Positions 3,456 to 32,090 of a stretch of DNA of 44,206 bases are shown in pieces (the first letter of the stretch is position 1; each line of letters opens with the position of its first letter). The notes under the pieces are model-generated. The model saw nothing but the letters and a program-made list of their open reading frames with translations. It did not search any database and was not told the origin of the DNA. Both the position numbers and the translations under genes were made by a program. This DNA comes from Octopus sinensis (taxonomy: Eukaryota): contig NW_021834821.1 in NCBI RefSeq assembly GCF_006345805.1, positions 1-44,206 of the forward strand, in the 5' to 3' direction.

Positions 3456-4609
3456 TGTTACGGAATCACCCGTCGTCGCTCGCCCGAACGGCACAAGTTC
3501 GCCACGGAACCCAGAGAGGAGAGAGGAGAGATACAACAACAACCACAACCGCAGCAGCACAGAGATACAGAGGCACAACCCAGAGAGACACCCAAAAGAG
3601 GCACAGAGGCAACAGAGACACTGGCTTATATTTAACAACAGTTTATATGACAATCAATTGCTACACATCAAATACATTTAAGGCAAACAACAAATCAATA
3701 CATCATATGGGTATACCACAGATCAAAAGCATTTAACAACATGCATGTAACAATATATCAGTCCGGAGACACAACAAGTCATATACAGTATTTCAAAGGT
3801 ACACATCACAGATAACGTCACATCAACAAGTCCTTTACTCTTCAATTCACAATGTTCTTTATCGACTACATCGACAGAGTCCTTGACTGTTCTTTTCACT
3901 GTTCAATACACCGTGACACATATCAATGCACAAACACATACCTCAATTCCTAATTGAATCTGCCAGTGTTCCATTCCTCTCAATACTGCTAAATCCTCTG
4001 TACATATCCCTTCTGTGCCGCCAAGCTTTCTCGCATCCAACTTGCTCCTAAAATTCCAACGCTTCTAAGATTCCATCTACTCGCTCTGACTTCCAGAATC
4101 CGACTGTGTTCTCTGACGACCGGTTCCCAACTGTCTTCTTCGAGGACCGGCCAGCGACTGCAAGATCCGTCTGTGTTCTTCGACGACCGCTCACCGACTG
4201 CCCAGAACCTCACTTCCTTGTCCTGCCTTCCACTCCCTATAATCTCCCACTTATAGCCTTTCTATTTGCTATCTGATTCCTTACTCTATCTATATCGCCT
4301 ACTGTCCCTTAGCCTCTCTATCTGTCCCTTAGTCTTATACTCTATCTCTCTCATGACAGCTCTACCATACTCTCTGCCTGTCCTTCTCTCTTACTGTCAA
4401 TACCCTCTCCATCTGCTCTTAGATTCCCTTAATCTGTCTTCCTCTTTCACATTCTCACTGACCCTTTTCTCAACCGCACCAGGTCACAGGTCCTTCCAAA
4501 ACTCATCAGTCTCCCACTAAACAAAGAACCTGTCAGTTCCTTTACCAGACATGCCGGCGCCACACCCACGATGTGGGTCAGCAATACTGCACTAGTTAAA
4601 CCCGTAACA
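3456..4609. mobile_element. Solo LTR (LTR retrotransposon, probably Gypsy-like)
   Basis: Starts TGTTACGG and ends CCGTAACA (8-bp terminal inverted repeat, TG...CA). ATAT lies on both sides (3452-3455, 4610-4613), a 4-bp TSD. No coding capacity. The superfamily is inferred only from termini and TSD length. Confidence 0.7.
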
Positions 4610-4829
4610 ATATTCTGCTTTCCTGTGGGTATAATTATGATGTATATTTATATTCCTATATAAATGTATCGGCAATGCTATAGAATAGAGTCGGAAATTA
4701 TCCAATACCTCAAATATTCCAACATCTTTTGATATTTCTTTTCTAAACTTGTACATATACATGAATAAATGTATACACAAACAAACACATACATATAATA
4801 TATATATATACACACCTACATTTCTACAG

Positions 4830-4871
<42 letters not shown>

Positions 4872-4873
<2 letters not shown>

Positions 4874-7238
4874 CCTCACACACACAAAAAACAAAAAACT
4901 CCACCACCTCCTCAACCCTCACCCCCTTCCCCATCCTCCCCCACTGCTCCCCCAAACCCCTCCTTCGTACCTCCCCCCCCCCTCCCACGGACCCACACCG
5001 TGACCTTCCTACGCCTAACCCATCTTCACCCAACCACCTCTACCCTCCCCTTCACACCCCTGCACCCCCTCTGCCTGACCCTAGTCCTCCCACCACCCCG
5101 CTTCCTCGCGCTGTTGTCACTATACCCCCCAACCTCCCCCTCTCCGCCGCCGAGCGTTCTCTCCTCAGTAAGGGTCTCCGCTTCACGCCACTCACGCGCC
5201 ACTGTGATGAGTTCGAGACTCGGGCTGACGTCAACCTGTTCCTGCGCCGCCTCAAACTTTGCGCATACTACCACGCGTCCCCGCAGCGTCACAACAATCA
5301 GGATTGCCTTGTGGAGCTGGGGCGTCGTCCATCCCACTGGACGCCGCCCCCAGGCCTATTCAGTAGCCTAGATTCGTTTGTACATGACTGCAACGCGTTG
5401 GTCCACCGGTTCAACTTTGAACCACGTCCCCGCCGAACCAACCTCACTCGGGCCAAATCCATTGCCCTTCGCCACCTCCGCCGCCGTGATGACATCGTCA
5501 TCAAGCCGGCGGACAAAGGCGGGGCAGTGGTAGTGTGGCGCGCGGACCTATACAGGGAGGAAGCGCTCAACCAGCTTCAAAATCCCCTCTTCTATCGCCT
5601 CCTCCCCTCCGATCCCACCTCCTCCTACCAACAGCGAGTTTCCTCCACCATCCGCGACCTCATCTTCTCCTCTGCTCTTCCCCCACCGCCACCAACCTCA
5701 TCGTCCGCACACCCCGCATCTCCACCATCTACTTCCTTCCCAAGATCCATAAACCCTCTAATCCGGGCCGTCCCATAGTCTCTGCCTGTAATTGCCCCAC
5801 TGAACTCATTTCCCTATACCTCGACCGCATCCTGTCCCCCCTAGTCGCAGCCCTCCCATCCCACATACACGACACCAACCACGCCCTCCGTCTCTTCAAT
5901 TCCTTTTCCTTCCCTTCCAGCCCCTCACACCTCCTCTTCACATTAGATGTAAAATCCCTGTACACTGATTCCCCACAATGACGGTCTCCTAGCCCTCCAA
6001 CACTTCCTCGACCGTCGTCCCGACCCCACCCCTAGCACCCCCACCCTCCTCCGCTTGGCTGAGCTCGTCCTCACCCTCAACTGTTTCACGTTCGCCGGGG
6101 AAACGTACCAACAGGTGTCCGGGGTCGCGATGGGAACTAGGATGGGCCCCAATTTCGCCAATCTCTTTCTTGGCTACATTGAGGCCCAAGTATTCTCCCA
6201 GTTCTCCGGGCCGACCCCCGAACTATACGGTCGCTATATAGACGACTGCATAGGTGCCAACTTTCACCCCTCTCTTCAATTCACCTCCACCATCTCCAAC
6301 ACCTCTGTCAACTTCCTCGACATCTCTCTCCGAATCGACCACCACTCCAACTCTCTCACCACCTCCGCCTTCTTTAAACCTACGGATTCCCACCTCTATC
6401 TCAACTTCTCTCCTCCCACCCCTTCCACACCAAACGAGCCATCCCCTACTCCCAGTTCCTCCGCCTCCGACGTTTGTGCAGCCGCGACCAGGATTTCGAG
6501 TCCAATCTCAATACCTGGCCCGCCTGTTCAGACTCCGAGGTTACCCACCCATACTCATCTCTAATGCTCTCACCTGCGCCCGACGCATCGACCGCACCAC
6601 CGCCCTGTCTCCTTCCCCCCCCCACCCACCCCTTCCCCATCCTTTTCCACCCCTCTACCCTACCCCTTCGTCGCAAGATACTACGTGCCTTCCGTCGCCT
6701 CCAGCTTGATCCCACAACCCGCCCCATTTTCCCTAACCCACCCCTGTCCTCCTTCAAACGAGCCCGTAATCTACGGGACCTCCTGGTCCACAGCACCCTC
6801 TCTCCTTCCCCCTCAGCCCCACACGGATCATTCCCTTGCTCTAGATCCCGCTGCAACACTTGCCCCTTCATCACCAACACCACTGCTGTCACCGGCTCCA
6901 ACCGGCGCACTGTACGTATTAGGCACTCTTTTACGTGCACCTCGTCTGGCCTCATTTACTGCATTAAATGCAACCTATGCAGGATGCTGTATGTAGGAGA
7001 GACGGGACGCCGGTTGTCCGATCGATTCACAGAACATTTGAGGGACGTTCGCCTACACTCCCTTTCTCCTATCGCACGCCACTTCCGCTCGGCCATCCAT
7101 TCCCTAGATAACATCTCAGTGTTTGGTCTCGCCCCCCACAATGGCCGTCCTCTTTCTAGGCTCCACTTGGAGCAACGCTACATCTTCACCCTACAAACCA
7201 CTACCCCACACGGACTTAACACAGCCCCCTCCTCCTAG
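4872..7238 (+). pseudogene. PLE ORF: reverse transcriptase + GIY-YIG endonuclease, frameshifted
   Basis: Joined frames give LLSKGLRFTP, IVIKPADKGGAVVVW, FLPKIHK..GRPIVS, LDVKSLYT, QQVSGVAMGT, RYIDD, FLDI, KPTDSHLYL, RGYP, linker CSRSRCNTC, and endonuclease LIYCIKC..C..YVGETGRRL..RF.EH...LEQRYI...HGLN. Confidence 0.92.
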
Positions 7239-7259
7239 GTTTTTTTTTTCTCGGATAAA

Positions 7260-9890
7260 CACCCCCCCCCCCACACACACACCTACCTACATCCCACACG
7301 CCTGTTCAAACACACACATACGGATACACATCTACGTACACGCATTCATAATCTAATCACACATACTTACAGACACACATGCACACACTAATATACAAAC
7401 CAACACGCACATACATACACACATACATACATACACACACACATACATACTTACACACACACACACAGACATACATACATACATACACACACACATACAT
7501 ACGTACACACATACACACACACACACACATCGCACATACATACTTCACACACCTATACTTACATACACACACACACATGCACACATACATGTACGCACGC
7601 ACACATACATACACACATACCCACACATGTACACCTTTACACGAATGCACACACACATACACCTATTCGCACCTAGGCAGCCCCCCCCTTTTTTTCTGCT
7701 TTCTAGTTTTGGTTGATGGATCCTCGGTTCCCGTGGAGCGGGTTGTTCGGGGGCCCCCGCGCGCGCACGCCTTGGCGCGTGACAGGGGTTGGTCGGCCCC
7801 ATGGGCTTGCGTTGTATTGTTTGTGTGTTGTGTGTGCGAGCGCGCTTCGTGTGTGTGGGCGTGCTTCGGTTGTGTGCGTGCGTATGTATACATACATACC
7901 CACACACACGCATGCATCCCTACCCACACACATACACGCACACCTACTCACACACACACTTACACACACACATACACACACACACATACCTGCGCACACA
8001 CACACATACACATACACACACATACCTACTTCAGACATACACACACACACCTCACACATACATACACACACATACCTACTTCAGACATACACACACACAG
8101 ACATACACCCATACACTCACACTCACACGCATACACACACACACACATACACACGCACACGCACACATACACACACACACACACCTACATACATACATTA
8201 CACTTGTACACACACACACTTACATTCATACACACACACACACACATACACATACATACGCACACACACATATACTTACACACATGCACACACACACACA
8301 CACATACATACATACACCCACACACATACACACACACATACTTACATACTCCTATACGCACATACATACACACATACACACTCACACATACATACACACA
8401 CACATACTTACACACGCACTCGCCTGCACGCGCACACATATGCATGACAAACACCCATACACTCACACTCACACACACACACACCAACATATACACGCAC
8501 ACATACACGCACACACACACACACACACGCCTACACACCTACATACACACACATACACGGACACACCCATACATACTTACATACATACACCTATACACAC
8601 ACGCCTACACACCTACATACACACACATGCATACACACACACACATGTACGCACATACACACACATATACGCACATACATATATACCTACACACATGCAC
8701 ACACACACACACACACACACATACGCACACGCATGCATGCACGCACACCTACACGCATGTACGCATACATGCACACACACACACACGCACGTACACATAC
8801 ATACCTACACACACACATACATACACCCATACACATACATGCATCCTACACACACAGACATACACACTCACACACACATACACACACACACACTCACTCA
8901 CACACCTGCATGTACGCGCACACACATGCACATACACACACTTCCACACACACACACGTACATACATACACACTCATACACACACACACACACACGGACA
9001 TACATCTATACACACATATACACACACACATACTTACATACATTCATCGGACACACTGACACTCAGACTTACACACAGACACACTCACACATACATACTC
9101 ACACACGCAATCGCAGGTGCGCGCACATGCTCGCTTGTGCGCGTTCGCGCACGCTTGCACCACGCTCATGGGTGACCGACCGGATCTCCTGTCCGTATCT
9201 GGGGCCGGCGCGTTGTCTTTGGGTTCTCCCACGCCTGTCGCCGCGGGACCACTCTTCCATCTTCCCCCTCCTCTCCCCCCCCTTCGCTGCAGTTCTTTTT
9301 CCCTTACCCCCCCCTTTTGTACACACACGCACACACATACACACACACACACATTTGCATATATATACACATTACATTTACACACACTTCAAATTTACTT
9401 GCCACACACACAACTACGCACGCTGGACATATACACACACTACCACTCAACACACACACTGGAACATTACATACGCCCCCACCCTTTCCCGCCCCGCACG
9501 CACTAACATATACATATTTTCTGTTTTTTTATCACGCCTCACACACACATACACACACGCACACACTCACACATACATACACACGCACACACACATACCT
9601 TCCTGTTTCTGATCTGCCTTTCCGACTTGCTAGGGTACCCCCACACCACTCCTTTAATTCTACTACTGCCTGCTACTAGCCATTGTCCACCATACACACA
9701 CATACACACACGCACACACTCACACATACATACACACGCACACACACATACCTCCCTGCTTCTGATCTCCCTTTCTGACTTGCTAGGGTACCCCCACACC
9801 ACTCCTTTAATTCTACTACTGCTTGCTACTAGCCATTGTCCACCATACACACACATACACACACACGCACACTCACACACACACACCGTC
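7260..9890 (+). repeat. Large compound (CA/CATA)n tract
   Basis: Mostly ACAC/ACAT runs. It generates the spurious His/Thr-rich ORFs in the track. Confidence 0.95.
9540..9885 (+). repeat. ~153-bp tandem duplication
   Basis: CTGATCT..CTTTC.GACTTGCTAGGGTACCCCCACACCACTCCTTTAATTCTACTACTGC occurs at about 9609 and 9762. Confidence 0.85.
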
Positions 9891-10061
9891 ATCTCCCAAC
9901 ACCTTTTTTACCATTCCCTCATTGATTCAGCTCTCCTGTTTTTAAAAAACATTTTCCTCCTTTTTTACTACTTCCGTCTTTTCAGTATGTGACCTCGTGA
10001 AGACGACCTGCAATTTTTTTCCTCTGTCCTCCCGTCTCGGGATCTTTCTTTCTTTCTCTTA

Positions 10062-10098
10062 TGTTTCCGACGAAGAGCTCCGCTCGAAACGTCATACC
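10062..10098 (+). ncRNA. Minimal type I hammerhead ribozyme motif in the PLE 3' repeat
   Basis: TGTTT-CCGACGA-A-GAGC-TCC-GCTC-GAAA-CG-TC-ATAC. Core is the variant CCGACGA, stem II is GAGC/GCTC, GAAA is present, palindromic ACGT forms stem III, and predicted cleavage is after GUC at 10093. Confidence 0.65.
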
Positions 10099-10529
10099 CT
10101 CCTTCTTCCATTTTCCTGAGCGCCTAATAATAATAATACTGTAATTGTTCCACGTGTTGTTGTTTTTTCTGTTTTCCCGTTTGGATTAACCTATATATAT
10201 ATATATACATCCTGTGGCATAACTACAGATGAACACCCCATCGACTTTGTTTCCTCATAACTTCCAGGAAAATGGATATTTTTAATGAAACTTCCACTTT
10301 CATTTCCTAACAGAAAAGGATGCTCTCAAAAGAAATCCTCTTTTACAAAGCTCTTATTTAAATCCCTGTGGATAAATCCCAGCAAGAATCTTCTCAGGCT
10401 CTCCAATATTTTACAATTATATAAAGAGAAAGAATCGGGGGCCAGGAAGTGGGCAAAAATAATCAGAGATTTTTAAAATATTCTTTTTATTTTTTATAAC
10501 ATAAATGTGTTTCTGAGGGAAAAAATGAG

Positions 10530-11170
10530 GGAAAAAAAAGAAGACAAGGAGGGTGGTGTGCTAGAAACAACAGCCAAATCTCCCTTAAATCACACATTTT
10601 TTCCCTCGACCCCTTACAAAACATTTTACCTACAAATTTCTTTTTTATCGTAATCTGCATCGTTTCAAAGTTATTTCTACCAAATTTCATTCAAAAATAC
10701 CCATATTTATACAAAAATACCTTTATACACATGTATATACCTACATATACACACAGGTCTTTGCTATGTTTTTTAAACACATAAAACTCATAGATACACT
10801 TAAACCGCCGCAGGACAATATTTTTAGAGTTGCTTCTTAAGTGTCCTTCACTTTTTTGATGAAAAACGATACAAATTTCAGAGTATTTGGCTGTTATTTC
10901 TAGCATGATGTTAGGCCATCTATAGGACAATATTTGACATGGATGCTTTGGAAATTGTCCTTTGATTTTTATTTGTGATGAGACAAAAATGTGAAGGTTT
11001 TTGTGGCTCTTTCTAGCATGAAATGAGACCATATACAGGCCAATTTTATTTATGAATGCTTCTTGCTGTCCTTCAAAATTTATATGAAAAGTAAAGTGGT
11101 TTCTATTTCTAGCATGAAAAATGACCAGCTATGGGAAAGCTTTTACTGAATGCTTCTTAAAGTGTCCTTC
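10530..11170. repeat. Degenerate repeat cluster carrying the GCTAGAAATAGCAGCCAAA motif family
   Basis: GCTAGAAACAACAGCCAAA near 10560. Reverse-strand TTTCTAGCATG and GTGTCCTT units recur about every 110 bp from 10830 to 11170. Confidence 0.55.
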
Positions 11171-11347
11171 TCTTTTTTTTTGAACCCCCAACAGCAACAA
11201 CAACAACAACAACCCTACGAGGACGAAAGGCAATGTTTGTGCGTGTGTGCAGTTGGAATGTCACTGCAACAACAACAACAACAACAATCTATTCTTATTA
11301 AACGTTAAAAACTGTCAGATGCAGACTGCACACACGCACACACAACG

Positions 11348-11535
11348 CTGATGATGATGACGATGATGACGGTGATGATGATGATGATGATGATGTGATG
11401 ACGATGATGACGATGATGACGACGATGATGATGATGATGACGATGATGACGACGATGATGACGATGATGGTGATGATGATGACGACGATGATGACGACGA
11501 TGATGATGATGGTGATGATGATGATGATGACGATG
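11348..11535 (+). repeat. (GAT/GAC)n trinucleotide microsatellite
   Basis: Direct reading of the sequence. It lies downstream of the large gene's stop codon. Confidence 0.95.
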
Positions 11536-11646
11536 AAGGCGGTGGTGGTGGTCGTCTGCTGTTGTTGTTGTTGTTGTTGGTCGTCTGCCTTTTAATGGAG
11601 AATCAATGATTATGACCAGACATTCCTATACATACATGCATGCGTG

Positions 11647-11680
<34 letters not shown>

Positions 11681-11923
11681 AACATACATACTTATAGCCT
11701 TATTTCTATACATACATTCCTAAATATGTGTGTATATATATATATAAACACATGTACACATACTGTATATAAATATACACACACACACAAAGAGAGAGTG
11801 TTGAGGAATGTTACAACAATAAGTGTGTAGAATGCAATGTATGCGATGCAGGTTCGATTCCCGGGCGAAGCCATTTACAATAAGAAGAAGAAGAAGATTG
11901 AAGTTTAATATTTCTGGAAATAT

Positions 11924-14900
11924 TTATTTGTCAAAATAAAAGAAAGCAAAAGATTGACGTCCAGGAATAATTCCAAAAACCATCAAAGAATTGTCTGAAA
12001 CATCCAAACCAAGAACTTCAACGACTTCATTATCCTCCCCTCTGAGGAGTAAATATTTTGGATTATCTTTTAATCTCAGGATTTCATCATCTTCAGATGT
12101 TTCCTCTTCAATATGTCGAGGTATTTCGTAAATATTGTTTCTTGTATCTGTTATATAAACACATTCACCAATTATGGTCAGACGAGGTCTTGCAATATAA
12201 TATCCCAGAACAATAAACATTTCTTCTATTCTTATCCTCCTCACCAAAGACTTTTCCCTGAACCATTCCACAAAACACAAATCTTCCCAATTTCCAGACT
12301 CCTCTTCCACCTCCCTCCTCACAACAACAACATCACCAAAAGATGTGACTCCCACACCATACACCCCTTCATCTCCCTCAAACCTTCCCCATCTCCTCAT
12401 CTCCCCACGACACACTTCATCTTTACATTTCCCATCTTTGATATCAACCACATCCACATAATAAGGGTCAAAGATGTCGGGGTCACCGCAATAATAGTAA
12501 TCCTTGTTGTTCTTCCATCTTTGGTATTTCTCGTGTCTCTCTTCTTGAGTTATGTCTCTAATATAATGACCACCACACACGAGTTGATTGTCGTTGTATT
12601 TATAAATCCTGTTGTAGTATTTCTCAGTTCTGATGGTTTTTAAACGACGGAGTACCCTGTTGAAGACCCTCATTTCTCTCCCAAAGGCGACAATGAAACA
12701 TTCCTCTGTCCACCGACATATGTCCAGTGGTGTTCGTTGTTGTTGTTCATGTTGAAGTATGTCCACTGTTGTTGTTGTTGTTGTTCTGATTAATGTGACA
12801 CTTTCTCGAAACATCAACACACTCACATTCTCATCTAACTTAATTAGTTTACTGTTCCGGTCCCTAATGTCCCTAAAATCATAATCAACAGGTTCCTCGA
12901 ATGCAGGAATGGAAAAAGGGACCATTGCTGTCCTATATGGAAGTCTCCTCACTGATATTTCATCAATTCCTGAATTATTAATCTCCGCTATGTAATTACC
13001 ACATCTCACCTTTAATCTACCTTTACCAATTATTTCACCTGATTTACCTCTTCTTCTTCCTCCTCCATCTCCATCTCCTCCTCTGTATTCCAATTTATTA
13101 ATTAATTCATTACTGAATATTTCCTTGTTCTTTTCAGATGTAATGGAAGGGAAACGAAGACCAGAATCAAGATTTAATGACAACACAGATTCCAGAATGT
13201 TCACTTGGTCCCCATCAATCTTTATGCAATGACATTCAATCAATTCATTATGTACACACCAGTAAATACCCGCCACTTTTCTCCATATTACACCATAAGG
13301 GATGAGACTCGACCAAACTTGAGATGTCTGCAAATCTTCTCCATTCAGTTGAAATATTTCTTTCCTTTTAGGAACCGTGGCCATTATGTGTGATTCTTGT
13401 GTAAAACACACACCACCAACTAAACTTGCAACATTTCTGTGACATAGCAACTGGCCGTCTTCATCGAATATTTTAACATTTCCATTATTGGCTTTTTCAC
13501 ACACAACTGTCTTCCTTCCTCAGAGACATCAAAATCTTTTACTTGAACAGGACATTCGTCTGTTTGTAAACGAGCAACCGGGAAGCTGTCTCGATTCACC
13601 ATAAACAACCCTTCAACATACAATTCATTCTCTCTCCTTTCGGGGCTTCCAACAAACCTTGGTCCTTTACAGTCTATACTGGAGAATTCTACTCCATCTT
13701 TATAAATTCTTTTATTTAAAAATATTCTCTTGTATTCCCCATTCTGGGTCAAACACAAAATATTTCGATATCCGGATAAAACAAAATATTTCTCCCACTG
13801 ACCATGAATGTACAAAAAACTGTCATCAATTGTCATCTTGTCATCATCACCAACATAATACTCCATGTAGTGTCTGACTGAATGTAAATATTGACCACCA
13901 CTGTTGAAGAAAATGATGAATCTTTCGTTGAAGACGATGATGACATCTTCATCAGAAACTTTAATATCCCGGATTATATCATAATAATCTCCATCTTCTG
14001 TTCTCCTTATTAATGGTTCAGGTATGTCTATTTTTTTTATTTCCTTCACACTCGAATGTATTTCATCAATATCAACAAAATGCAAATGTCTTACATCTCT
14101 CCATTCACTCAAAACCAGTTGATTGTTTGATAAAGAAGCCACACATTCATAGTTATTTCTCGTTTGGTAAATTACCAACGACAATGGAAATTCCACTTTT
14201 AATGTCCACAGTTGGTGTTTATTAAAACGATCCCAAGTCATAATGACCAGTGTGTTTGACTGCCATCGACACATTTTCATATTACAATAAACATTCACTT
14301 TGATTGAATCCATAAGGTGACCATCCAATGTGAATATCTTAATGTTTCCATTCTCCCAGTCCCATCCTGCAATCAGATTATTTTCAGTAAGAACCAAACG
14401 ATTAATCTTCGCTGGTTCTTTGTCTCCCAAATGTTTAGGGAGAGGAATATGTCTGGCTTTATCAGAAACTGTCAGGTTCTGTAGATATAAAGTGGAAGAC
14501 AAGATTTCACTGAGAGAAATGTGTCTGGAAAATACATCCACCAGGTCGATATAATAATTAAGTTGATTATTAGTAACGAGATCATTAACCAACAAGTTCT
14601 TATCGTTTATGGCAAACATACGGCTTCTGTCTATCAAATAAACAGACGTTTGGTCAATAGATCCACCTTGGAGACTGAGGGGACGTTTCACTTGGGACAT
14701 TAAAACACTGGGGACCATCTTAGTTTTACTAGCATAACAATATCTAGTTTTACCACCACGAAGACGATGACGACGATGACCACCACCACCTATTCTAGTG
14801 TTGTACTGAAAAGCTTTTTCCCTAGTAACAATTAATAGCTTTTCTGTTTCCTTGTCTACTGATAATGATTTCACAAACACAGGGATATTAATTGTCTTAA

Positions 14901-17394
14901 TTACTTCAACTTGATTATAATAATTGATGGCTAAAATGTCTAAATGTGATGGTTTATCACAATAACAAACAATTTCACATTCACCCATCTTACACACCCG
15001 TACATAAGGCTGCCTTAATGATACACTTCTCACTCTCTTTGATACGTTTCCGATGACCCTTAATTGTTTCTGTAGAGGTAATGTGACCCCTATATGATTA
15101 GAATCCCATCGACATATATCTGTGGCTGTAGACGGCAGAGATAATCTGGACACAATGTCTCCTTCCTCAGAAATATACAACAAGCAATCATGGTTGATGT
15201 CGGACACCACCAACTGTCCATTGGACAGATTACATATTCCGCCAATTACAAGTTTTTGGTCATTCTCCTTTTCTTTGAGTCGTAGATTTAGATTTCTGAT
15301 ATAAGGATTTTTAATGGGTAAAAGACAGCCAGACGACCGGTCTTGATACTTGTAAAGAAGAACCCTGTTGAGTTGAGTGTCCGGGACATAAAGAGTTCCT
15401 TGGAAAACAGCAATGTGAGGGTGAACAGGGAAAGGCAGTTCCCACTGCCATTTCATTTGTCCATATAGATCGTAACATCTGAGAATAGAGTGTCTCCTGA
15501 AGAGGACATAGAAATAAACATTATCAGAGTAGATGTGATGAGGGTGGCCATAGAATGGAAGGTATTTTTGAAAAAGTTCTTCACCACATGTGGAATAAAA
15601 TACCATTTTATTTTCGTTTCCATCTATGACTACAAAATTAATTGGAGTTGCAGCAATGCTGACATTATGATGTCCCAGAGAAATTCTTTCTGCAATGTCA
15701 ACTTTACCTTCGTTGATCAAGAGGATATGGACCTCACTTTTGTTTTCAGTGGTGGTCACAGCTAGACACTTATTTGATACAATATGACATATTTTCATGT
15801 AACCAGTTTGCACCTTTATTAAAGGGCCTTTTCTTAGTTCAGGACAGGTGATATACTGAAATCCTTTCATTTCAGGATAAAATACCAGGAATCTGTTTGC
15901 GTTTATTCTACAACAGAAAGAAGGAAGCTCAAGGAAAACTGAATTATTTTGGCTAATTATTTCCCCGTTATCAGTGAATACTTTAGCTTTCTTGTTTTTG
16001 TAAATTATTAATATAGAAGATGTAGACATAGGTAGAATATTTGTAATGTTGTAGCAATCCTCAATATCAATATAGTCTTTTAAACTGGGGGTATGTAGCT
16101 GGTGGTTGTATGACAGTTTGGGCCAAAAGTCTTTATTCATTTGAATACCATGTGGTTTGCCGCAATAATCTGTTACCAAAATGGTATCTTTACCAACAGA
16201 AATAGAGCGGCATTTCCTGCCAATGTCCCTCCTTGTCACACCACCTTTAGCTGAAATCCTATAAATTATTTGTCCCTGGAGGACATAGAAATAATTTTGG
16301 TAGAGAGAGATTTTACTTGGGAGGTGCAGAGAATGGGTCTCTACCTCCCATATCTGTTGGCCATCCAGTTTGTAACAGATTACTCTGTTGATGCTGGCGA
16401 ATGTAATTACAAGTATATTCTGGACCCCTACAGCAATATCTGTAGGGGTTTCTTTGGTAATAAATTGATAGTTTATGGTATTATCCTCCCAATCAAATTG
16501 GTAAACTGTCTTACCAAACATTTCTACACCTATAAGTGTAGAATCTTCCAAGTAACTCACCATATGTAACCCCAACTGTATCCTTTTGATCTTTAAGGTT
16601 TTGGGGCTGATAATAAGAATCATTTCTTGGAAGGGGAGGGTTGCCAGAACCATGTCTTCACTGATTCTGGTGAAACTGGTCACAGAAGATGGACAATGGA
16701 CATCAATTCTGTCACTGTCTCTTGTTACTAAACTTATTGTCTTACAAAGGTGGGAATATGTCATCACTCCCTCCTCTATGATGACAATATTGGATATTAT
16801 TGGGATTTCTTCAAATTCTTCTCCAGATTCCTCAATATTTACTTCTCTGGTCACAACTGGCTGAAGCGGCCGAAATTTCGTGGTTACTTTTGCTGGTTCA
16901 ATGGTCTTGTGGTTGTATGGGTTACAGGTGACATAAATGTCAAAGAGTCTTTGTTGAAACCATTCGAGGTCCTGCTCAATAGAAATATTCTGTTCTTTAG
17001 TATATTTCAGCAAAATTCCAAGTCTCTCTTTGACCTTTTCTAAAATACGATTGGCACTTAACCCCAGACTTTCATAATGTTTGCTCTCCTTAACTATATG
17101 CTCCATAAACATCATGCAGCGATCATATTGAAGACGAATCCTCTGTATTTTAGCAACTATTTGTTTTTCAGTTTCTTTTGTGCTTTCTTTGTCTCCAGAT
17201 ATGGCCTTCACTGCTGATTCTCTCTCTGAAATAACACTACAATATCCTTCATCACTCCTCCTTGAACCATCATCTTCCTCGTATTTACCCCTTTGATTGT
17301 CAACTCCTTCTTCATCCCCTTTTGGTGTTGAGTAACTCAAAGCCCATTTCTGAGGGATAAGTTTCCTTAAAGTATTTTCAGTCTGGTCTTCCAT
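11924..17394 (-). CDS. Coiled-coil + tandem NHL-like beta-propeller protein (TRIM-NHL-like C-terminal modules), 1823 aa after repairing one frameshift at 13512-13513
   Basis: Two overlapping ORFs (1324 aa and 526 aa) join in frame if one A is added: DFDVSEEG-KTVVCEKANNGNVKIFDEDG, a typical NHL blade. The span is free of microsatellites. Recurring blade pairs include ICNLSNGQLVVSD..CLLYISEEG..DICRW..VTLP and LVLTENNLIAGWD..NIKIFTLDG..MCRW. A splice acceptor lies 7 nt upstream of the ATG. Confidence 0.85.
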
Positions 17395-17401
17395 AGTGAA
17401 T

Positions 17402-17425
17402 CTGCAAAGAAATATAAGGAAAACA
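17402..17425 (-). promoter_or_regulatory. Splice acceptor for the large exon
   Basis: Minus strand reads TTTTCCTTATATTTCTTTGCAG|ATTCACTATGG: polypyrimidine tract plus CAG, exon starting at 17401. Confidence 0.7.
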
Positions 17426-18539
17426 TTTAGCTTTGTGAAAATATTAAAGTTTCAGGGAGATGATGTTTGCTTCATCATTTGAAAAACACCAACAAAACAT
17501 TTATGTATTTCTGTCAGTGAATTAATCTTGTCTAATTAATATTTAAACAACTTATTACAATCTATTCTAAGATGTATTAATAAGTTTCATTAATTACATG
17601 GAGTCTAGATATTAGAAATAATTATTTTCACTGGAAATGATATTTGCTCTCAACATCACAAAGAAATAGTCATGTGTGGCTTAGATTTATTTAACGATAA
17701 TTAGTCAAAGAGATTCCCCTGCTCCAAAAGCACTCAATAACGAGACACTCTAAGCTGTAGAGAAAATTAACTTTAATTGGTGTACATGCTATATTATGTC
17801 CCAACACACAGCAATCATGTTCAAACTTTGTTAACATGGAACAATTAGCAAAACATAGGCTTTATTATGTTTCATAGACATTTGTCAGGTACAAGTATTA
17901 CTAATGATGGGACAGTCATGGTTGGCTTGGTTTCCATCATATTTACCTGGATTAACAGATAGCAATAAAGCTGGAGATGAAACTGTTCTTAACCTGACAA
18001 ATGCTGTAAATCTCTCGACATTTCAATATAATCCACACAATTATCATACACAACATTGATTAACTCGGAAAGCTGATCCAAAGATGGGCTTTCATATAAT
18101 CACACTGATAGACAGCATGTTGAGAGGATCGTTATTATTGTTGCTAATTGAGATTAATAAAGATTGGTTAATGAATAAGCCTAATTAGTGAAAGGTAGGT
18201 TCCTCCTAATTATCTTTTAATATAAGGGACAATGTTTGGGTAGCAATGAGAAAGATGTGTTTGTATGAAAAAGGGGTTTGGCAGGTGAAGTGTGTTTTGT
18301 TTTGTGTCAGGTGAGGAGTTATAACTTGGTGTAGTTTATTATGAAGTATTGGGGGTTTAATGAGGTGGATTAGGAAATATTGGTGGGGGTGTTTAATAAC
18401 ATTGTGGTGACCCATCATCATCAGAATGATCCTCCACCCCTCCTTGGTCTATGAAATAATGACTGTTACTCTATTGACCCCAGGAGGAATGAAAAATAAA
18501 AGAGACCTTCTTCAGGATACACATACATATATATGTATA

Positions 18540-20417
18540 CTAGCAGTATCGCCCGGTGTTGCTCGGGTTTGTAAGGGAAATAACTATATAAGCATTTTTA
18601 GTGAGTTATAGCAAAAAATGCATTAAAAAATGGAATAAAATATGATGGTAATTTTTTTTTTAAATCGTTGACTCATTGTAGACATTTTTAGAGAGTTACT
18701 TCCCTTATATAATAGCGAAAAATGCATTAAAATGGAATAAAAAATGATGGTAGTTTTTTTTTTTTAATCGTTGACTCATCGTAGACATTTTTCGAGAGTT
18801 ACTTCCCTTATATAATAGCGAAAAATGCATTAAAATGGAATAAAAAATGATGGTAAATTATTTTTAAAATCGTAGACTCATCGTAGACGTGCGCTAATAC
18901 CCAGAAGGGCTCGATATGAATCACGACTATAAGATACCCGGCTTTGGTTACACTGCACTGCAAAATGTGGGAGTAGTTAGGAATCTAAATCGTAGGAGAC
19001 AGACACACAACCTTACTTTTATATATAAAGATTTGTGCAACAACTAAAACATTCAGTTGTGCAAATTGTTTGAATCACGACCATAAGATACCCGAATTTG
19101 GTTAAACTGCACCGCAAAATGTGGGAGTAGTTAGGAATCTAAATCGTAGGAGACAGACACACAACCTTACTTTTATATATAAAGATTTGTGCAACAACGA
19201 AAACATTCAGTTGTGCAAATTGTTTGAATCACGACTATAAGATACCCGGTTTTGGTTAAACTGCACCGCAAAATGTGGGAGTAGTTAGGAATCTAAAACG
19301 TAGGAGACAGACACCAACCTTACTTTTATATATAAAGATTTGTGCACAACGAAAACATTCAGTTGTGCGAATTGTTTGAATCACGACTATAAGATACCCG
19401 GTTTTGGTTAAACTGCACCGCAAAATGTGGGAGGAGTTAGGAATCTAAATCGTAGGAGACAGACACACAACCTTACTTTTATATATAAAGATTGTGCAAC
19501 AACGAAAACATTCGGTTGTGCAAATTGTTTGAATCACGACCATAAGATACCCGAATTGGTTAAACTGCACCGCAAAATGTGGGAGTAGTTAGGAATCTAA
19601 ATCGTAGGAGACAGACACACAACCTTACTTTTATATATAAAGATTTGTGCAACAACTAAAACATTCGGTTGTGCAAATTGTTTGAATCACGACCATAAGA
19701 TACCCGAATTTGGTTAAACTGCACCGCAAAATGGGGAGGAGTTAGGAATCTAAATCGTAGGAGCCAGACACACAACCTTACTTTTATATATAAGATTTGT
19801 GCAACAACGAAAACATTCGGTTGTGCTAATTGTTTGAATCACGACTATAAGATACCCGGTTGGTTTAAACTGCACCGCAAAATGTGGGAGTAGTTAGGAA
19901 TCTAAATCGTAGGAGACAGACACACAACCTTACTTTTATATATAAAGATTTGTGCAACAACAAAAACATTCGGTTGTGCAAATTGTTTGAATGACGACTA
20001 TAAGATACCCGGTTTTGGTTAAACTGCACCGCAAAATGTGGGAGTAGTTAGGAATCTAAATCGTAGGAGACAGACACACAACCTTACTTTTATATATAAA
20101 GATTTGTGCAACAACTAAAACATTCGGTTGTGCAAATTGTTTGAATCACGACTATAAGATACCGGTTTTGGTTAAACTGCACCACAAAATGTGGGAGTAG
20201 TAGTTAGGAATCTAAATCGTAGGAGACAGACACACAACCTTACTTTTATATATAAAGATTTGTGCAACAACGAAAACATTCGGTTGTGCAAATTGTTTGA
20301 ATGACGACTATAAGATACCCGGTTTTGCTTAAACTGCACCACAAAATGTGGGAGTAGTAGTTAGGAATCTAAATAGAAGGGGACAGACACTCACACAACT
20401 ACAGCTTTATATATATA
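18540..20417 (-). mobile_element. Non-autonomous Helitron with amplified 5' termini
   Basis: Minus strand 3' end is the hairpin CCCGAGCAACACCGGG followed by CTAG|T at 18540. There are internal ~105-bp repeats (18600-18900) and repeated 5' ends A|TCTTTATATATAAAAG. Confidence 0.75.
19033..20417 (-). repeat. Tandem array, 9 units of ~153 bp
   Basis: Units start at about 19033, 19187, 19340, 19492, 19645, 19797, 19950, 20104 and 20260 (TTGTGCAACAAC...TATATAAAGAT). Confidence 0.95.
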
Positions 20418-20419
20418 TA

Positions 20420-20935
20420 CTAGCAGTATCGCCCGGCGTTGCTCGGGTTTGTAAGGGAAATAACTATATAAGCACTTTTAGAGAGTTACTTCCCTTATAG
20501 ATGCCAATTCGGGCTTTCTTAGCCATTTCTGTTTTGGTGTCTTCAAGCCACGAAGTCGTTGTTCTAAAAGAACGCTGGTCTCCTTGACAACGCTTTACAA
20601 CGTTAATTTCCTTACACTCCCTTCCCCACAGCTTCACGGGGGAGGGAAGAAGGGGAGGAGAAGCAACACAGGTGCAGGTGTGACGATGGACGCCAACTCC
20701 GCCGCCATCGACACACGAAAAAATATGCATTAAAATGGAATAAAAAATGATGTTAAATTATTTTTAAAATTGTAGACTCATCGTAGACGCGCGCTAATAG
20801 CCAGACGGGCTTGATATGAATCACGACTATAAGATACCCGAATTTGGTTAAACTGCACCGCAAAATGTGGGAGGAGTTAGGAATCTAAATCGAAGGGGAC
20901 AGACACTCACACAACTACAGTTTTATATATATAGA
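20420..20935 (-). mobile_element. Non-autonomous Helitron, ~516 bp, same family, head-to-tail with the array
   Basis: 5' A|TCTATATATATAAAACTGTAG at 20935. 3' hairpin CCCGAGCAACGCCGGG plus CTAG|T at 20420. Confidence 0.75.
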
Positions 20936-21160
20936 TATGAAAAGGAGTGGCTGAGTGTTGGGGAGAGACTCAGGTAGGTCCAGTAACATCCCTAGTTTCA
21001 TTGGAAGAATGGTGAAGAGAAGAGATTTACTGCCAATCTTTGTCACAGCAGTAAGATAGTAGAGTAAAAAGAAGAAGAGAGAGTGATTGAGAGATGAAAG
21101 ATAGAGGTAAGGGTGATAGGGGTATGGCAGTAGGGACTCAAGCTCCGAGAGTTGACACTC

Positions 21161-21213
21161 ATCAAACTGGTTTTTGGAGGTCTGGGAATATACCTCCAAA
21201 AAACCAGTTTGAT
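21161..21213. other. 20-bp stem hairpin with 12-nt loop (pre-miRNA-like)
   Basis: ATCAAACTGGTTTTTGGAGG / CCTCCAAAAAACCAGTTTGAT, with an imperfect basal extension of about 10 bp. Confidence 0.4.
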
Positions 21214-21278
21214 AAATGCTAATAAACGAATCTTTCGGATCTTGGGTCACTTTGTTACTTCTGCTACATATATATATA

Positions 21279-23272
21279 TATATAAGAAAATAGTAAAGAG
21301 TGAAAAAACGACAGAAGGCTTAAATGTTAAAGAATATATATATTTGTGTCAAGATGTCTGGAGAATATTGGAAAAAATTTTTTTTCCCTCCTTAAAATGA
21401 CATAATTTTATAATTTTTAAAGAAATACCGGTTTCGCAGTTTGTTTTTCAAATTTCTTGTGACTTAATGTTTATTTATAATAACGTAATTCTTGTATTTT
21501 TGCTATGGAGAGCTCTAAATAAGGGAAGGAATTAGTGATTTCTTCCGGTGTAAGGGAGATAATCGCTTAAAAAAATTTTTTTCGTTTCCTCTTAGTGTGA
21601 ATAGTTGAGTCTGGGTTTGTACTTTTCAATGAAGAATGTTTCCTTGTTTAGTCTAATTTGTGATGATAATCCAAAAGCACATTGGTAAAATGGAAAGATT
21701 AAAAATTGTGGTTTCAGTTGCTTTGCGCATTTCTCAATGTGTTCACTAAAAGGTATCATTCTATATTCTGGGAATGCAATCTGTTGTCGATGCAGTGTGC
21801 ATCTACGCCTGAGTGATAGTCCCGTGGACCCCACGTAGTCTTGGTGGCAACCCGAGCATTTAATGACATAAATTATGTTTTCAGAGGCACAAGTAAAGTT
21901 AGATTTGATCTTGAATTTCTGTCCCTCTTTAAAAAAAAATTCTGATCCTTCCAATAGGTTAGGACATGTTGCACAGTTCGATCTACCACATTTTTTTACT
22001 TTTGCATCCGTCGTTTTAGAAGACAATTTTGCCTTTGTGAGAATCTTTTTAAGTGATTTAGGCTGTTTGTAGCTTTTAATGATTTGGTGTATGTTTAGAA
22101 TTTCCTTTAATTTGGGGTTTTTATGAAGTATTGGTAAATTCTGGGTGATGATGGTGAAAGCTTCTTTGTTTTGGGGTTGTATGTAGATATGTAAGGTAGT
22201 ATTTTCGGGGAAGGTGTGTTGTTGTGTTGAACTTTTCTTAAAGTTTCTATGTTGATTCTGTTGCACGTCTGATCCCATCCTCTATGAGTTGAGTTGGGTA
22301 ATGTCTGTCAATTAAGGTGTTTTTGAGTTCTTGCAGTCTGAAGTTCCTGGTATTTTGTTCTGACACTATTGTGCATATCCTTCTTGCAAGGTTGAAGGGG
22401 ATGTTTGTTTTAGTGTGTCTTGGGTGGCATGAATTAAAGAGAAGGTATTGTTTGGCGTCTGTGGCTTTGTAGAAAATGTCTGTTTCTATTTTAAGGTTAA
22501 TTTTTTTGATTAGTATATCCAAGAACAGAAGCTCCTTTTGGTTGTATTCCATTGTGAACTGTATATTTGGGTTTATGCTGTTCAATAGGTTTTTAAATTT
22601 TAAGAGTTTATCTGTGTTTTCATTCCAGAGAATAAAACAATCGTCCAAGAATCGTTTCCAGTTCTCTTTTATGTATTGAGAGAGGGGGTTTCCAAATGCT
22701 CGGGTTGCCACCAAGACTACGTGGGCTCCACGGGACTATCACTCAGACGTAGATGCACACTGCATCGACAACAGATTGCATTCCCAGAATATAGAATGAT
22801 ACCTTTTAGTGAACACATTGAGAAATGCGCAAAGCAACTGAAACCACAATTTTTAATCTTTCCATTTTACCAATGTGCTTTTGGATTATCATCACAAATT
22901 AGACTAAACAAGGAAACATTCTTCATTGAAAAGTACAAACCCAGACTCAACTATTCACACTAAGAGGAAAGGAAAAAAATTTTTTTAAGCGATTATCTCC
23001 CTTACACCGGAAGAAATCACTAATTTCTTCCTTATTTAGAGCTCTCCATAGCAAAAATACAAGAATACGTTATTATAAATAAACATTAAGTCACAAGAAA
23101 TTTGAAAAACGAACTGCGAAACCGGTATTTCTTTAAAAATATAAAATTATGTCATTTTAAGGAGGGAAAAAAAATTTTTCCAATATTCTCCAGACATCTT
23201 GACACAAATATATATATTCTTTAACATTTAAGCCTTCTGTCGTTTTTTCACTCTTTACTATTTTCTTATATA
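21279..23272 (-). mobile_element. Penelope-like retroelement 2, 5'-truncated, with inverted 3' duplication
   Basis: Minus-strand RT C-terminus and GIY-YIG at 21592-22693. 22694-23272 is an inverted copy of 21279-21861. Confidence 0.9.
21592..22693 (-). pseudogene. PLE RT (C-terminal part) + GIY-YIG endonuclease fragment
   Basis: Motifs WKRFLDDCFILW, FLDI, FYKATD.KQYL.FNSCHPRHTK.NIPFNLARRIC, CGRSNCATC, IIYVIKCSGC.QDYVGST, LNKETFFIEKY.PRLN. Two 1-nt frameshifts fall in A runs. Confidence 0.9.
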
Positions 23273-23336
23273 TTCACCCACGTGCTTTACCAAACAAACT
23301 TTCTTATCTATATATATATATATATATATATAAAAA

Positions 23337-23640
23337 AAATCAAAATCAAATCCAAGTCGATCAACATCAATGGAAATTGTAGCTGTGATACCAGTGCCGG
23401 TGGCACATAATAAGCACCATCTGATCGCAGCCATTTGGCAGCCTCGTCTGGCACCTGTGTTGGTGGCACGTAAAAAGCACCACTACACTCACGGAGTGGT
23501 TGGCGTTAGGAAGGGCATCCAGCCGTAGAAACTTTGCCAGATCAGACTGGGCCTGGTGCAGCCTTCTGGCTTCCCAGACCCCAGTTGAACCGTCCAACCC
23601 ATGCTAGCATGGAAAGCGGACGCTAAGTGATGATGATGAT
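23337..23640 (+). mobile_element. Short element with RTE-type 3' tail (family C)
   Basis: GGTGGCACGTAAAAAGCACC unit, GGTTGGCGTTAGGAAGGGCATCCAGCCGTAG, ending GGAAAGCGGACGCTAA(GTGATGAT)n. Matches the 3' UTR of the RTE copy at 42214-42990. Confidence 0.8.
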
Positions 23641-24659
23641 ATATATATATACATATATATACCTTCACATACCCATGTATAAATATTTGTGTCCATGTAT
23701 GTTTATAGCTATGAATCAATGAACAACAAAAGAACAAGAGTTACGTAGACACCTTCATTAGCTTCCAGCTGTTTCTGCTACAGGAAGCAGTGAACTCGAG
23801 CTGAGTGTGTGTGCGCGTAGGGGTCTGTGCATTTGTTTATGCTTGCAATCTCTTTTAAGTTGCTCCAGGCAGAAACATCTGTCAACCAATCACCCCCACC
23901 TTGGAAGACATGGGAAATAAGAACTTTTGTTCTTGCAAAATGGTTTTGGGTGAGCAATAAGAAGGCTGTCTGTCTGTAAAACAAGGCTACAATAATATAT
24001 TCACCTAACCCATGCTAGCATACAAAGTCAGAAGTGCAATCAAACATAAGTAAACCCATGTTTATTCATTCATATACTCTTATGCACGCATAAACACACA
24101 CACACACGTGTATGTGTGCATCTGGTGTTAAGAAGATCATCCAGCTGTAGAAATCTTGCCAAATCTTTCATTGCAGCTCAGCAATGTCCTCTGGTTCACT
24201 GCTTCCTCGTCAACTGTCCTCCCCATGCCAGTTAGGGAAAATGGATGTCAAAACCTTTATAATGCATCAGATGATGTATTTTCTTTTCTGTATTTTCTTT
24301 CTCATAATTTTGTTTTGTTTCTTGCCAGGTTCTTGTGAGTCCCACTCAGTCAAGTCTATGACTACACTCGATGAGAGTCACCAATCCTCACTTGGCTTCA
24401 AGCAAGAGAATATTTCCCCAAGTTCTTCCAACATGAACAGCACAATGGTTGGATATGTTTTCTGGTGGAACACTGCAAACAAACGACTCTGTTTGTGTGA
24501 CGTGACATTTGTTTATAATTTGCAGCAGATGTCAAGACAAGGAGACATGAGCAGATATATGCACACACACACACACACACACACACATAAATGCATACAC
24601 ATACAAGTACAAATATAGATATGCATACATGAATATACACACACATGTATATACCATAG

Positions 24660-24812
24660 ACTTTATCAGTTCCTGGTACGAAACCCACTCACAAGGCTTG
24701 AGTCAACCTGGAACATTAGAAGAAGTTAATTCTTTAAGGTGCTGCAAAGTGGGACTGAACCTGAAACCACAAGATTGCAAAGTGAATTCCTTAACCTTAC
24801 AGCCATGCCCCC
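24660..24812 (-). mobile_element. SINE family A head, degraded
   Basis: CCACTCACAAGGCTT...GTGGGACTGAACC...ACAGCCA similarity to other copies. Confidence 0.6.
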
Positions 24813-24930
24813 ATCTTTTTTTGGTGATATTTTGAAGATAATAATAATAATAATCCTTTCTACTATAGGCACAAGGCCTGAAATTTTGGGTGTGGGGTCT
24901 AGTCGATTACATCAACCCCAGCACCCAACT

Positions 24931-25291
24931 GTAGTGGGTGCTTTTACGTGTCACTGGCACGGGGCCCAGTCAGGCAGTACTGGCAATGACCTCGCTCGAA
25001 TCTTTTACACATGCCACTGGTATAGGTGCCAGTAAGGCAATGCTGTAACGATCACACTCGAATGGTGTGTTTTACGTGCCATCGGCATGGAGGACAGATA
25101 GCTGCTCTGGCAACGATCATGCTCGGATGGTGCCCTTAACACCCTACTAGCACAGGGCTCGAGTGCCAGTAAGCCGACGCTGGTAACGATCACACTTGAA
25201 TGGTGCCTTTTATGTGCCACTGGCAAAGAACCCGGTTAGCCGCTCTGTCAGCGACCACACTCGTATGGTGCTCTTTGCACCCCGCTAGCAC
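24931..25291 (-). mobile_element. Family C internal repeat segment
   Basis: Repeated GGTGCTTTTACGTGCCA / GGCAACGATCA units shared with the other family C copies. Confidence 0.7.
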
Positions 25292-27300: not shown

Positions 27301-27650
27301 TCTTTAATTCTTGTACTTGCTTCAGTCATTTGAGTGTGGCCATGCTAGAGCACTGCCTTTAGTCAAACAAATCAACCTCAGGACTTATTCTTTCTAAGAC
27401 CAATACTTATTCTATTGGTCTCTTTAGCCAAATTGCTAAGTTACAAGGATGTAAACATACCAATATTGGTTGTCAAGCTCTGTTGGTGGGACAAACAGAG
27501 ACACATAAATATATCTGATGGGCTTCTTTCAGTTTCCATCTAACAGATCCACTCACAAGGTTTTGATTTGCCCAATGTGCCATGCAATAGGACTGAACCC
27601 AGAGCCATGTGGTTGGCAAGCATGCTTCTTACCACACAGCCACTCTTGTG
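27301..27650 (-). mobile_element. SINE family A, full length
   Basis: Tail TTCAGTCATTTG..GGCCATGCTAGAGCAC and head ...ACCACACAGCCACTC. Confidence 0.8.
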
Positions 27651-27744
27651 CCCCTGCCCCACTGCTTCTAATTCTTGTCACCTCCCACATTACCACTCCC
27701 CCTTTCCGTTGTCTCTCATAATATATATATATGTATATATTGTA

Positions 27745-27932
27745 TTCCTTTATTTGTTTCAGTCAATTGACTGCAGCCATGCTGGAGCACCGCCTGTAGT
27801 CAAATATAAATGGACCCCAGTTCTTATTCTTTGTTTTGCCCAATACTTATTCTATCAGTCTCTTTTGCCAAATCGCTAAGATACAGGGACGCAAACCCAC
27901 CAAAATCGGTCGTCAAGCAAAGCTGGGGGACA
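27745..27932 (-). mobile_element. SINE family A tail
   Basis: GTTTCAGTCA..GCAGCCATGCTGGAGCACCGCC...GGGGGACAAAC. Confidence 0.7.
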
Positions 27933-27961
27933 AACATATACACACACACATATATATATAT

Positions 27962-28440: not shown

Positions 28441-28589
28441 ATTCTTTCATTTCCTTCTACCAAATCCTCTCACAAGTCTTTGGTTGGCCTGAGGCTATAA
28501 TAGTAAACTCTTGCTCAAAGTATCACGCAGTGGAACTGAACCCGGAACTATGTGGTTGGGAAGTAAGCTTCTTACCACACAGCCACTCC

Positions 28590-28592: not shown

Positions 28593-28621
<29 letters not shown>

Positions 28622-32056: not shown

Positions 32057-32090
<34 letters not shown>

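Follow-up and report, generated by a model that had tools for sequence, protein, structure and literature searches.

An octopod family of intronless genes predicted to encode six tandem NHL-type propellers, with constant and variable modules

A 44,206-nucleotide stretch of Octopus sinensis DNA (contig NW_021834821.1), referred to here as the window, carries on its minus strand a reading frame of 1823 codons, broken by one frameshift, that belongs to a family of proteins escaping Pfam detection. The locus raises the question of what such a protein is built from, where its parts come from, and what the gene and its many relatives might do. With high confidence, the protein consists of six tandem propellers descended from the NHL propeller, the RING and B-box having been lost. 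The NHL domain itself is known, and the proteins are present in databases as unnamed predictions; the architecture and the family are undescribed, and the dozens of paralogues, several of them broken, and their mosaic evolution are new. To our knowledge, innate immunity and genome defence in cephalopods are poorly known, and the gene-family expansions highlighted in octopus genome papers are few (protocadherins, C2H2 zinc fingers and G-protein-coupled receptors).

Propeller modules, their ancestry and the reading frame

The two pieces of the frame, joined into one protein, comprise six propeller modules behind a helical head. The modules and two disordered loops within them are as follows (residue numbers are those of the joined protein).

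16048..16827, minus strand: propeller module 1, residues 190–449, variable; hhalign against the B-box-NHL propeller 91% probability, E = 9e-7, 212 columns; predicted local distance difference test (pLDDT) approximately 85, 23 strands
15238..16047, minus strand: propeller module 2, residues 450–719, constant, basic; hhalign 67%, E = 5e-5; 25 strands; isoelectric point (pI) 9.0; ratio of non-synonymous to synonymous divergence (dN/dS) 0.3–0.6
14413..15237, minus strand: propeller module 3, residues 720–994, constant, basic; hhalign 98.6%, E = 1e-15; pI 9.2
14737..14793, minus strand: Gly/Arg-rich disordered loop in module 3, residues 868–886; pLDDT <50 at model residues 774–796
13543..14412, minus strand: propeller module 4, residues 995–1284, variable; hhalign 98.2%, E = 3.5e-14, 238 columns; dN/dS 1.5–1.7 among close paralogues
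12854..13542, minus strand: propeller module 5, residues 1285–1514, the most constant; hhalign 90.5%, E = 1.4e-6; synonymous divergence (dS) 0.01–0.06 in every pair
13031..13084, minus strand: Gly/Arg-rich disordered loop in module 5, residues 1438–1455; pLDDT <50 at model residues 217–296
11927..12853, minus strand: propeller module 6, residues 1515–1823, variable; hhalign 91.3%, E = 9.5e-7, 240 columns; pLDDT up to 95; dN/dS 1.3–2.2 among close paralogues

The ancestry of the modules was established by profile comparison with proteins outside the family. In hhalign comparisons with an alignment of such proteins, all six module profiles match a TRIM-type NHL propeller (E from 1e-15 to 5e-5) and map end to end onto residues 400–655 of P0074 (CAE1315789.1), a RING-B-box-NHL protein of the cuttlefish Acanthosepion pharaonis. 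Each segment aligns from its first residues to the start of that propeller (P0074 residues 400–410), and the module starts given in a preliminary description of the locus, made from the letters alone (approximately residues 200, 450, 720, 995, 1285 and 1515), prove right to within a few residues. The segments also align with one another in register over 130–230 columns, the best pair being modules 3 and 6 (93% probability, E = 3.5e-7). Self-BLASTP of the joined protein detected no internal repeats, and tblastn gave a single weak internal match, between residues 746–810 and 1545–1607. The signature common to the modules and the outside proteins comprises G.lvvsD, a G..l turn, P.dIC.W and vTLP..kql, and is clearest in module 3 (NGQLVVSD...DICRW...VTLP).

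The bridge to the TRIM-NHL proteins (TRIM2, TRIM3, TRIM71/LIN-41, Brat, Mei-P26 and Thin), whose propeller is homologous to the octopod modules, is P0074, which matches NHL domains at E-values of 1e-11 to 1e-5. Its C-terminus matches the solved NHL propellers of TRIM3 and TRIM2 (approximately 2e-11), as well as Brat, TRIM71, PknD and the designed Pizza6, while its N-terminus matches the RBCC of TRIM28 and the RING of TRIM2; judged by these matches, P0074 is a true TRIM-NHL protein. A word-indexed search with P0074 as the query returned only three classical TRIM-NHL-filamin proteins, and its nearest relatives bear RING, B-box, filamin and NHL. The blade motif also matches, as in 'liagydkenknikiftldgqll' against TRIM71, and when the family profile was compared with PDB sequences only TRIM-NHL domains came out on top, below significance (E 0.14–0.6). 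The octopod proteins differ from the TRIM-NHL proteins in lacking RING, B-box and filamin, and in possessing six propellers rather than one. They likewise have 'G.lvvsD ... P.dIC.W ... vTLP..kql' in common with the molluscan (RING)-B-box-NHL-like proteins, such as P0074 and Mytilus galloprovincialis VDI39367.1 (P0071), but the latter measure 440–660 residues, have a single propeller that follows RING, B-boxes and a coiled coil, and are only approximately 20% identical to the octopod modules.

Pfam scans of the window protein and 17 full-length relatives gave no match to the NHL repeat (PF01436), no RING (E <= 0.01), no B-box and no significant WD40 match, and no B-box was found in the upstream ORFs (open reading frames) of the window. 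The absence of RING and B-box noted earlier thus extends to the full-length relatives. In the distant member P0051 the PF01436 match is marginal (E 0.002, 18.5 bits against a 20-bit cut-off).

AlphaFold2 models are in agreement with an all-beta chain. The model of residues 95–1294 (45 aligned sequences, mean pLDDT 65.9) consists of three helices followed by an unbroken succession of short beta strands in fours, with pLDDT of approximately 85 in module 1 and 70–85 across most of modules 3 and 4. The model of residues 1190–1823 has a pLDDT of 63 and a predicted template modelling score (pTM) of 0.57, with pLDDT rising to 95 in module 6, where the strands at approximately residues 1580–1730 are unusually long. 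Confident strands number 23, 25, 21, 22, 16 and 23 in modules 1–6, against 24 expected for six four-stranded blades. The Gly/Arg loops of modules 3 and 5 lie at an equal offset within their modules, and modules 4–6 are acidic, in contrast to the basic modules 2 and 3.

Foldseek searches of the PDB matched modules 1–4 to LRP2/megalin (7e-24), LRP4, DDB1 and IFT-A, and modules 5–6 to AIP1 (template modelling (TM) score approximately 0.4, the highest), IFT-A, EML1, UTP21 and COPB2. Such matches to models speak for fold class, not for ancestry. The YWTD arrays of LRP2/megalin, LRP4 and other LDL-receptor-type proteins, the best Foldseek matches for modules 1–4, are chains of six-bladed propellers; they are, however, extracellular and membrane-anchored, with EGF modules between the propellers, and are linked to the octopod modules by approximately 10% identity and TM scores of 0.05–0.16, without sequence kinship. 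DDB1, AIP1/WDR1, the EML TAPE domains and IFT-A carry several propellers in one soluble chain, as in the octopod family, but these are of the WD40 type with seven blades and are encoded by conserved single-copy genes. Taken together, the profile matches, the models and the multi-propeller Foldseek matches uphold the proposal of about six diverged NHL-type propellers; the closure of each ring is only inferred, since it was judged from strand counts and not from coordinates.

The region ahead of the propellers comprises two parts.

17170..17394, minus strand: acidic low-complexity N-terminus, residues 1–75; 18 D+E against 12 K+R, net charge −6, pI 4.6
16915..17169, minus strand: helical head, residues 76–160; AlphaFold2 helices at residues 96–109, 114–134 and 143–157

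The charge of the N-terminus agrees with its description as acidic, and modelling begins at residue 95. The stretch described as helical or coiled-coil is helical, with three short helices at approximately residues 96–157, but a long coiled coil is not borne out: in the model the head looks like a small helix bundle more than a long coiled coil, and its profile (segment S0) aligns with the coiled-coil region of the relatives at an hhalign probability of 0.3%, so that no likeness to the TRIM coiled coil was detected. In the window protein neither a signal peptide, the N-terminus being charged, nor a membrane-like hydrophobic segment (best 19-residue Kyte-Doolittle mean 1.52) was found; the protein is therefore predicted to be soluble and should be intracellular.

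The reading frame itself is as follows.

11924..17394, minus strand: whole reading frame, 1823 codons plus stop, intronless, with one frameshift
13511..13515, minus strand: frameshift site, GGAAG against GGN AAG (Gly-Lys) in intact paralogues; a 1-bp deletion at approximately 13513

An ATG-initiated ORF at 17394..13420 on the minus strand encodes 1324 amino acids; a second, at 13504..11924 on the same strand, encodes 526 amino acids in a frame offset by one and overlaps the first by approximately 85 bases. In three-frame translation the protein reading carries on through this overlap. Joining the frames at their common base reproduces the 1823-residue length quoted previously, the outer coordinates are exact, and tblastn with the joined protein spans 17394–11927. 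The 'one coding exon' of the preliminary description stands only once the frameshift is bridged, as the frame in the sequence is broken once. Open frames of 1324 and 529 codons at approximately 37% G+C cannot be due to chance.

The loss of one base is deduced from the sequence at the break, which falls in the first blade of module 5: GGAAG stands where the intact relatives, which read ...DFDVSEEGKTVVCEKANNGN... at this site, need GGN AAG. Because the 529 codons past the frameshift remain open, the lesion, if real, is very recent. Programmed −1 frameshifting was rejected: the break has no slippery heptamer, and the frame is continuous in every paralogue, which leaves a mutation or an assembly error. 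The window copy is thus either a very young pseudogene or the product of an assembly error. An exact look-up of the 1324-residue ORF found no matching gene record.

An octopod family with mosaic evolution

A first homology search returned 42 proteins, all from O. vulgaris, O. sinensis, O. bimaculoides or Argonauta hians, and with the family-profile search the relatives number 46, all octopod, all labelled hypothetical or uncharacterised and nearly all without a Pfam domain. The word-indexed search with the family profile found the same proteins again and no distant relatives. At least 50 gene models, none of them annotated, belong to the six-propeller family. An exhaustive HMMER search, in which a profile of modules 3–6 (alignment A3) was compared with 1.84 billion cluster representatives (E <= 0.001), gave 34 matches, comprising 28 family members, all from Octopus where the source was looked up, and six outside proteins (E 3e-5 to 8e-4). 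The latter, which include the cuttlefish P0074 and the Mytilus B-box protein P0071, carry B-box and/or NHL domains by Pfam at E <= 0.01 (NHL in five, B-box in four and RING in one). No decapodiform six-propeller member was found in this search, though the library holds the cuttlefish P0074. Every family match comes from the four octopod species, in keeping with the lineage specificity proposed at the outset.

A neighbour-joining tree contains four Octopus lineages, of which three are slow and single-copy and one is an expanded clade. Protein identity is 94% between O. vulgaris and O. bimaculoides in the lineage P0051/P0078; in P0047/P0075/P0076 it is 92% for the same two species and 99.5% for O. 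vulgaris against O. sinensis; and in P0044/P0045 it is 86%. The expanded clade consists of two Argonauta copies and a large burst otherwise exclusive to O. vulgaris, inside which the window copy lies beside P0001. The joined window protein is 92% identical to P0001 (intact, 1903 residues, O. vulgaris) over 1804 aligned residues, and 39% identical to an Argonauta member. The possibility that the window holds the O. sinensis orthologue of P0001 was rejected: the two proteins differ by 8%, against 0.5% for true vulgaris–sinensis orthologues, and the window copy is therefore a paralogue of P0001. Both Argonauta hians copies, P0040 and P0041, contain a proline/glutamine-rich insert of approximately 100–150 residues made of 'TPPPLQYH' tandem repeats between modules 5 and 6; in Octopus this position is occupied by no more than a short Thr/Gln-rich stretch.

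The gene is intronless in the paralogues as well: P0003, an intact copy, is a single exon of 5406 bp, and P0001 and P0011 likewise have a one-exon body, to which the gene models add doubtful tiny 5' exons. One O. vulgaris chromosome of 29.19 Mb (OX597841.1) bears approximately 30 of the gene models, with located copies at 6.55, 9.8, 21.9 and 22.66 Mb, which points to a small chromosome as an octopod hotspot for gene birth and death. The locus L003 (OX597841.1, 21.89–21.93 Mb) is a local case of this family's birth and death, with three copies within 43 kb (at 3903–9355, 27567–32924 and 38182 onward), the first of which, on the opposite strand, has broken up into four or more frame pieces and is annotated in part as a 411-residue gene. 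Many gene models omit whole blocks of the protein, as annotation does around frameshifts. The model P0002 is fused to C2H2 zinc fingers, P0017 to a DUF4371 transposase-like domain, and P0043 (2526 residues) consists of two copies joined; in a cluster this dense and rich in repeats, all three are probably annotation run-ons.

Divergence is distributed unevenly along the protein. Within the O. vulgaris burst, protein identity is 0.59 for the head and 0.79, 0.93, 0.93, 0.81, 0.97 and 0.86 for modules 1–6. The most variable stretch among recent paralogues is found at residues 91–150, where 93% of columns vary in the burst clade, and variation is somewhat more frequent in columns outside strands than in those inside. 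dN/dS was calculated by the pairwise Nei-Gojobori method for the window copy, P0001, P0003 and P0011, giving whole-gene values of 0.6–0.86. Per module the ratio is uneven: in close pairs it is 1.3–2.2 in modules 4 and 6 and averages approximately 0.5 in modules 2, 3 and 5. Between P0001 and P0003, modules 4 and 6 together hold 125 non-synonymous and 20 synonymous differences, above the neutral expectation (p = 0.004), against 47 and 28 in modules 2, 3 and 5 (Fisher p = 1e-4). Between the window copy and P0011, dS is 0.74, 0.36 and 0.33 in modules 1, 4 and 6, and 0.09, 0.06 and 0.02 in modules 2, 3 and 5; gene conversion is therefore the best explanation for the uniformity of the latter. As evidence for selection, these sequence comparisons are suggestive, not final.

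Possible function and competing explanations

The account that we consider the best explanation as a whole, with a modest leaning in its favour, begins with the locus as one paralogue in an octopod-specific family of intronless genes of approximately 5.4 kb, whose proteins would serve as multivalent recognition scaffolds inside the cell. Each propeller derives from the one NHL propeller that molluscan RING-B-box-NHL (TRIM-NHL-type) proteins carry, with loss of the RING and B-box. Propellers 2, 3 and 5 are near-identical among paralogues, a state probably maintained through gene conversion and purifying selection, and would engage a shared partner, perhaps RNA or a conserved protein; two of the three are basic. 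The head and propellers 1, 4 and 6, which diverge fast, would confer ligand specificity on each paralogue, with propellers 4 and 6 apparently under diversifying selection. A protein without an E3 domain of its own would be expected either to sequester its ligand or to bring in other factors. The family exemplifies a TRIM-type recognition domain that has shed its ubiquitin-ligase module and is multiplied six-fold within one polypeptide, and the split between constant and variable propellers turns into a testable idea as to which propellers bind a common partner and which recognise changing targets.

That the mechanism serves recognition or defence is put forward tentatively, at somewhat less than an even chance, from features of the sequence. 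The role suggested in the preliminary description, a multivalent recognition scaffold that may belong to immunity, is indirectly favoured by the family's expansion, its copy turnover and dN/dS above 1 in two propellers. The constant/variable pattern resembles that of intracellular defence or restriction factors. Fast-evolving TRIM restriction factors such as primate TRIM5 and TRIM22 (PMC3845644) resemble the octopod family in lineage-specific expansion, copy turnover and positive selection confined to the recognition domain, and differ in that the variable domain is B30.2/SPRY and the E3 ligase module is kept. A more far-reaching version is possible but doubtful: octopods would have invented a class of intracellular factors for recognition or restriction that has so far gone unnoticed, in which the constant propellers, held uniform by gene conversion, would be the common anchor or effector, and the variable propellers and head, diversified by positive selection in dozens of paralogues on one small chromosome, a repertoire against viruses or transposons.

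Several points weigh against the favoured account. The mean pLDDT is only 63–66 and the alignments are shallow (33–45 sequences); ring closure and blade number were read off strand counts, with 16 confident strands in module 5. The dN/dS values come from pairwise comparison of four non-independent sequences, and gene conversion distorts such estimates; relaxed constraint would also account for a whole-gene dN/dS of approximately 0.8 and for the large number of broken copies. As hints of RNA binding, the basic charge of modules 2 and 3 and the Gly/Arg loops are weak. Searches of the literature by subject and by locus name yielded no account of the family, of its six-fold NHL architecture or of its evolution.

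Relaxed constraint is the core of the alternative that survives best, namely that the recent copies, the window copy included, are a swarm of duplicates in decay, largely or wholly without function, and that only the old single-copy members act. The frameshift in the window copy, the neighbouring copy broken in several frames and the many gene models that skip chunks are all in line with decay, as are the whole-gene dN/dS, the non-coding flanks that are as alike between loci as the coding sequence (92–98%), and the far slower old lineages (92–94% amino acid identity between O. vulgaris and O. bimaculoides). Decay without constraint is nevertheless hard to reconcile with the open frames of approximately 1800 codons retained in many burst copies, with the 529 codons still open beyond the window frameshift, with dN/dS of approximately 0.5 or less in modules 2, 3 and 5, or with ratios in modules 4 and 6 that exceed the neutral value rather than equalling 1. 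Decay is the strongest rival for the frameshifted copy in the window; as an explanation of the recent copies we regard it as fairly unlikely.

Descent from TRIM-NHL propellers is itself an argument for a post-transcriptional RNA regulator resembling Brat or LIN-41, in which the NHL propellers would read motifs cooperatively and which would have no link to defence. Direct contact with RNA is established for the NHL domains of Brat, LIN-41 and Mei-P26 (PMC4015489, PMC5908797, PMC9070667), and the high pI of modules 2 and 3 and the Gly/Arg-rich loops of modules 3 and 5 would suit such a role. At the present divergence, however, the RNA-contact residues are untraceable, modules 4–6 are acidic, and dozens of fast-changing paralogues are atypical for developmental regulators; this alternative appears unlikely. 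A structural or cytoskeletal scaffold for an octopod-specific cell structure, in the manner of the EML, AIP1 and IFT proteins, is very unlikely: Foldseek does rank AIP1, IFT-A, EML1 and microtubule-doublet proteins best for the C-terminal half, and the whole chain resembles DDB1 and the LRP arrays, but these matches reflect the generic propeller fold (7–12% identity, low TM), the sequence ancestry is NHL and not WD40, and scaffolds are normally conserved and single-copy.

Duplicated segment and surroundings of the gene

The homology between the window and its paralogous loci extends beyond the gene.

10192..18539, strand not assigned: core of the duplicated segment, comprising the gene with approximately 1.7 kb on its 3' side and 1.1 kb on its 5' side; blastn against L001–L004 92–98%, colinear

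Further colinear pieces between the window and the paralogous loci are located at 4609–4853 and 20929–24931. A compact transposon unit was rejected: no common termini were seen, and the homology fades gradually over more than 10 kb. In the absence of common termini, segmental duplication fits better than a compact mobile element. A mobile or selfish element with the gene as its cargo or as a component would account for an intronless 5.4-kb gene in dozens of copies across a chromosome, and retroelement debris lies close by and two gene models are fused to transposase-type DUF4371 or zinc fingers; this is the least probable of the explanations considered, given inter-locus homology many kilobases long that decays gradually without common termini, a common core in which no transposase, integrase or reverse transcriptase was found, three old lineages that are single-copy in three species, and only generic propellers among BFVD matches. 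A viral origin was also rejected, the BFVD matches being to generic WD40 and PQQ propellers only.

The remaining features of the window lie on either side of the gene. Positions 4853–10192 are an insertion relative to L001, where the flanks adjoin; the insertion is GC-rich (51–58%) and contains reverse-transcriptase-like motifs, recognised by eye, and an ORF at 6474–7235 on the plus strand with a weak GIY-YIG match (E 0.007). Judged by its sequence, the insertion probably represents a Penelope-like retroelement in decay. The strong negative GC skew is explained by long arrays of CA-rich microsatellites at 7361–9886. An Rfam scan of the window gave no match.

Upstream of the gene, approximately 1.2 kb from the ATG, satellite arrays occupy 18608–20390 (103 bp x 2.7 copies and 154 bp x 9.6 copies, 95% matches); they are absent at the equivalent point in L001, L003 and L004. 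At 21595–22278 on the minus strand, an ORF of 228 residues has weak Pfam matches to SIR2 (E 2.7e-4) and GIY-YIG (E 0.01). Its DNA is a dispersed repeat, with a second copy at 2812–3653 of L001 (86% identity), and may be another retroelement fragment. On the downstream side, approximately 400 bp beyond the stop codon and within the segment common to the paralogous loci, a (TGA)63 microsatellite is present at 11349–11536.

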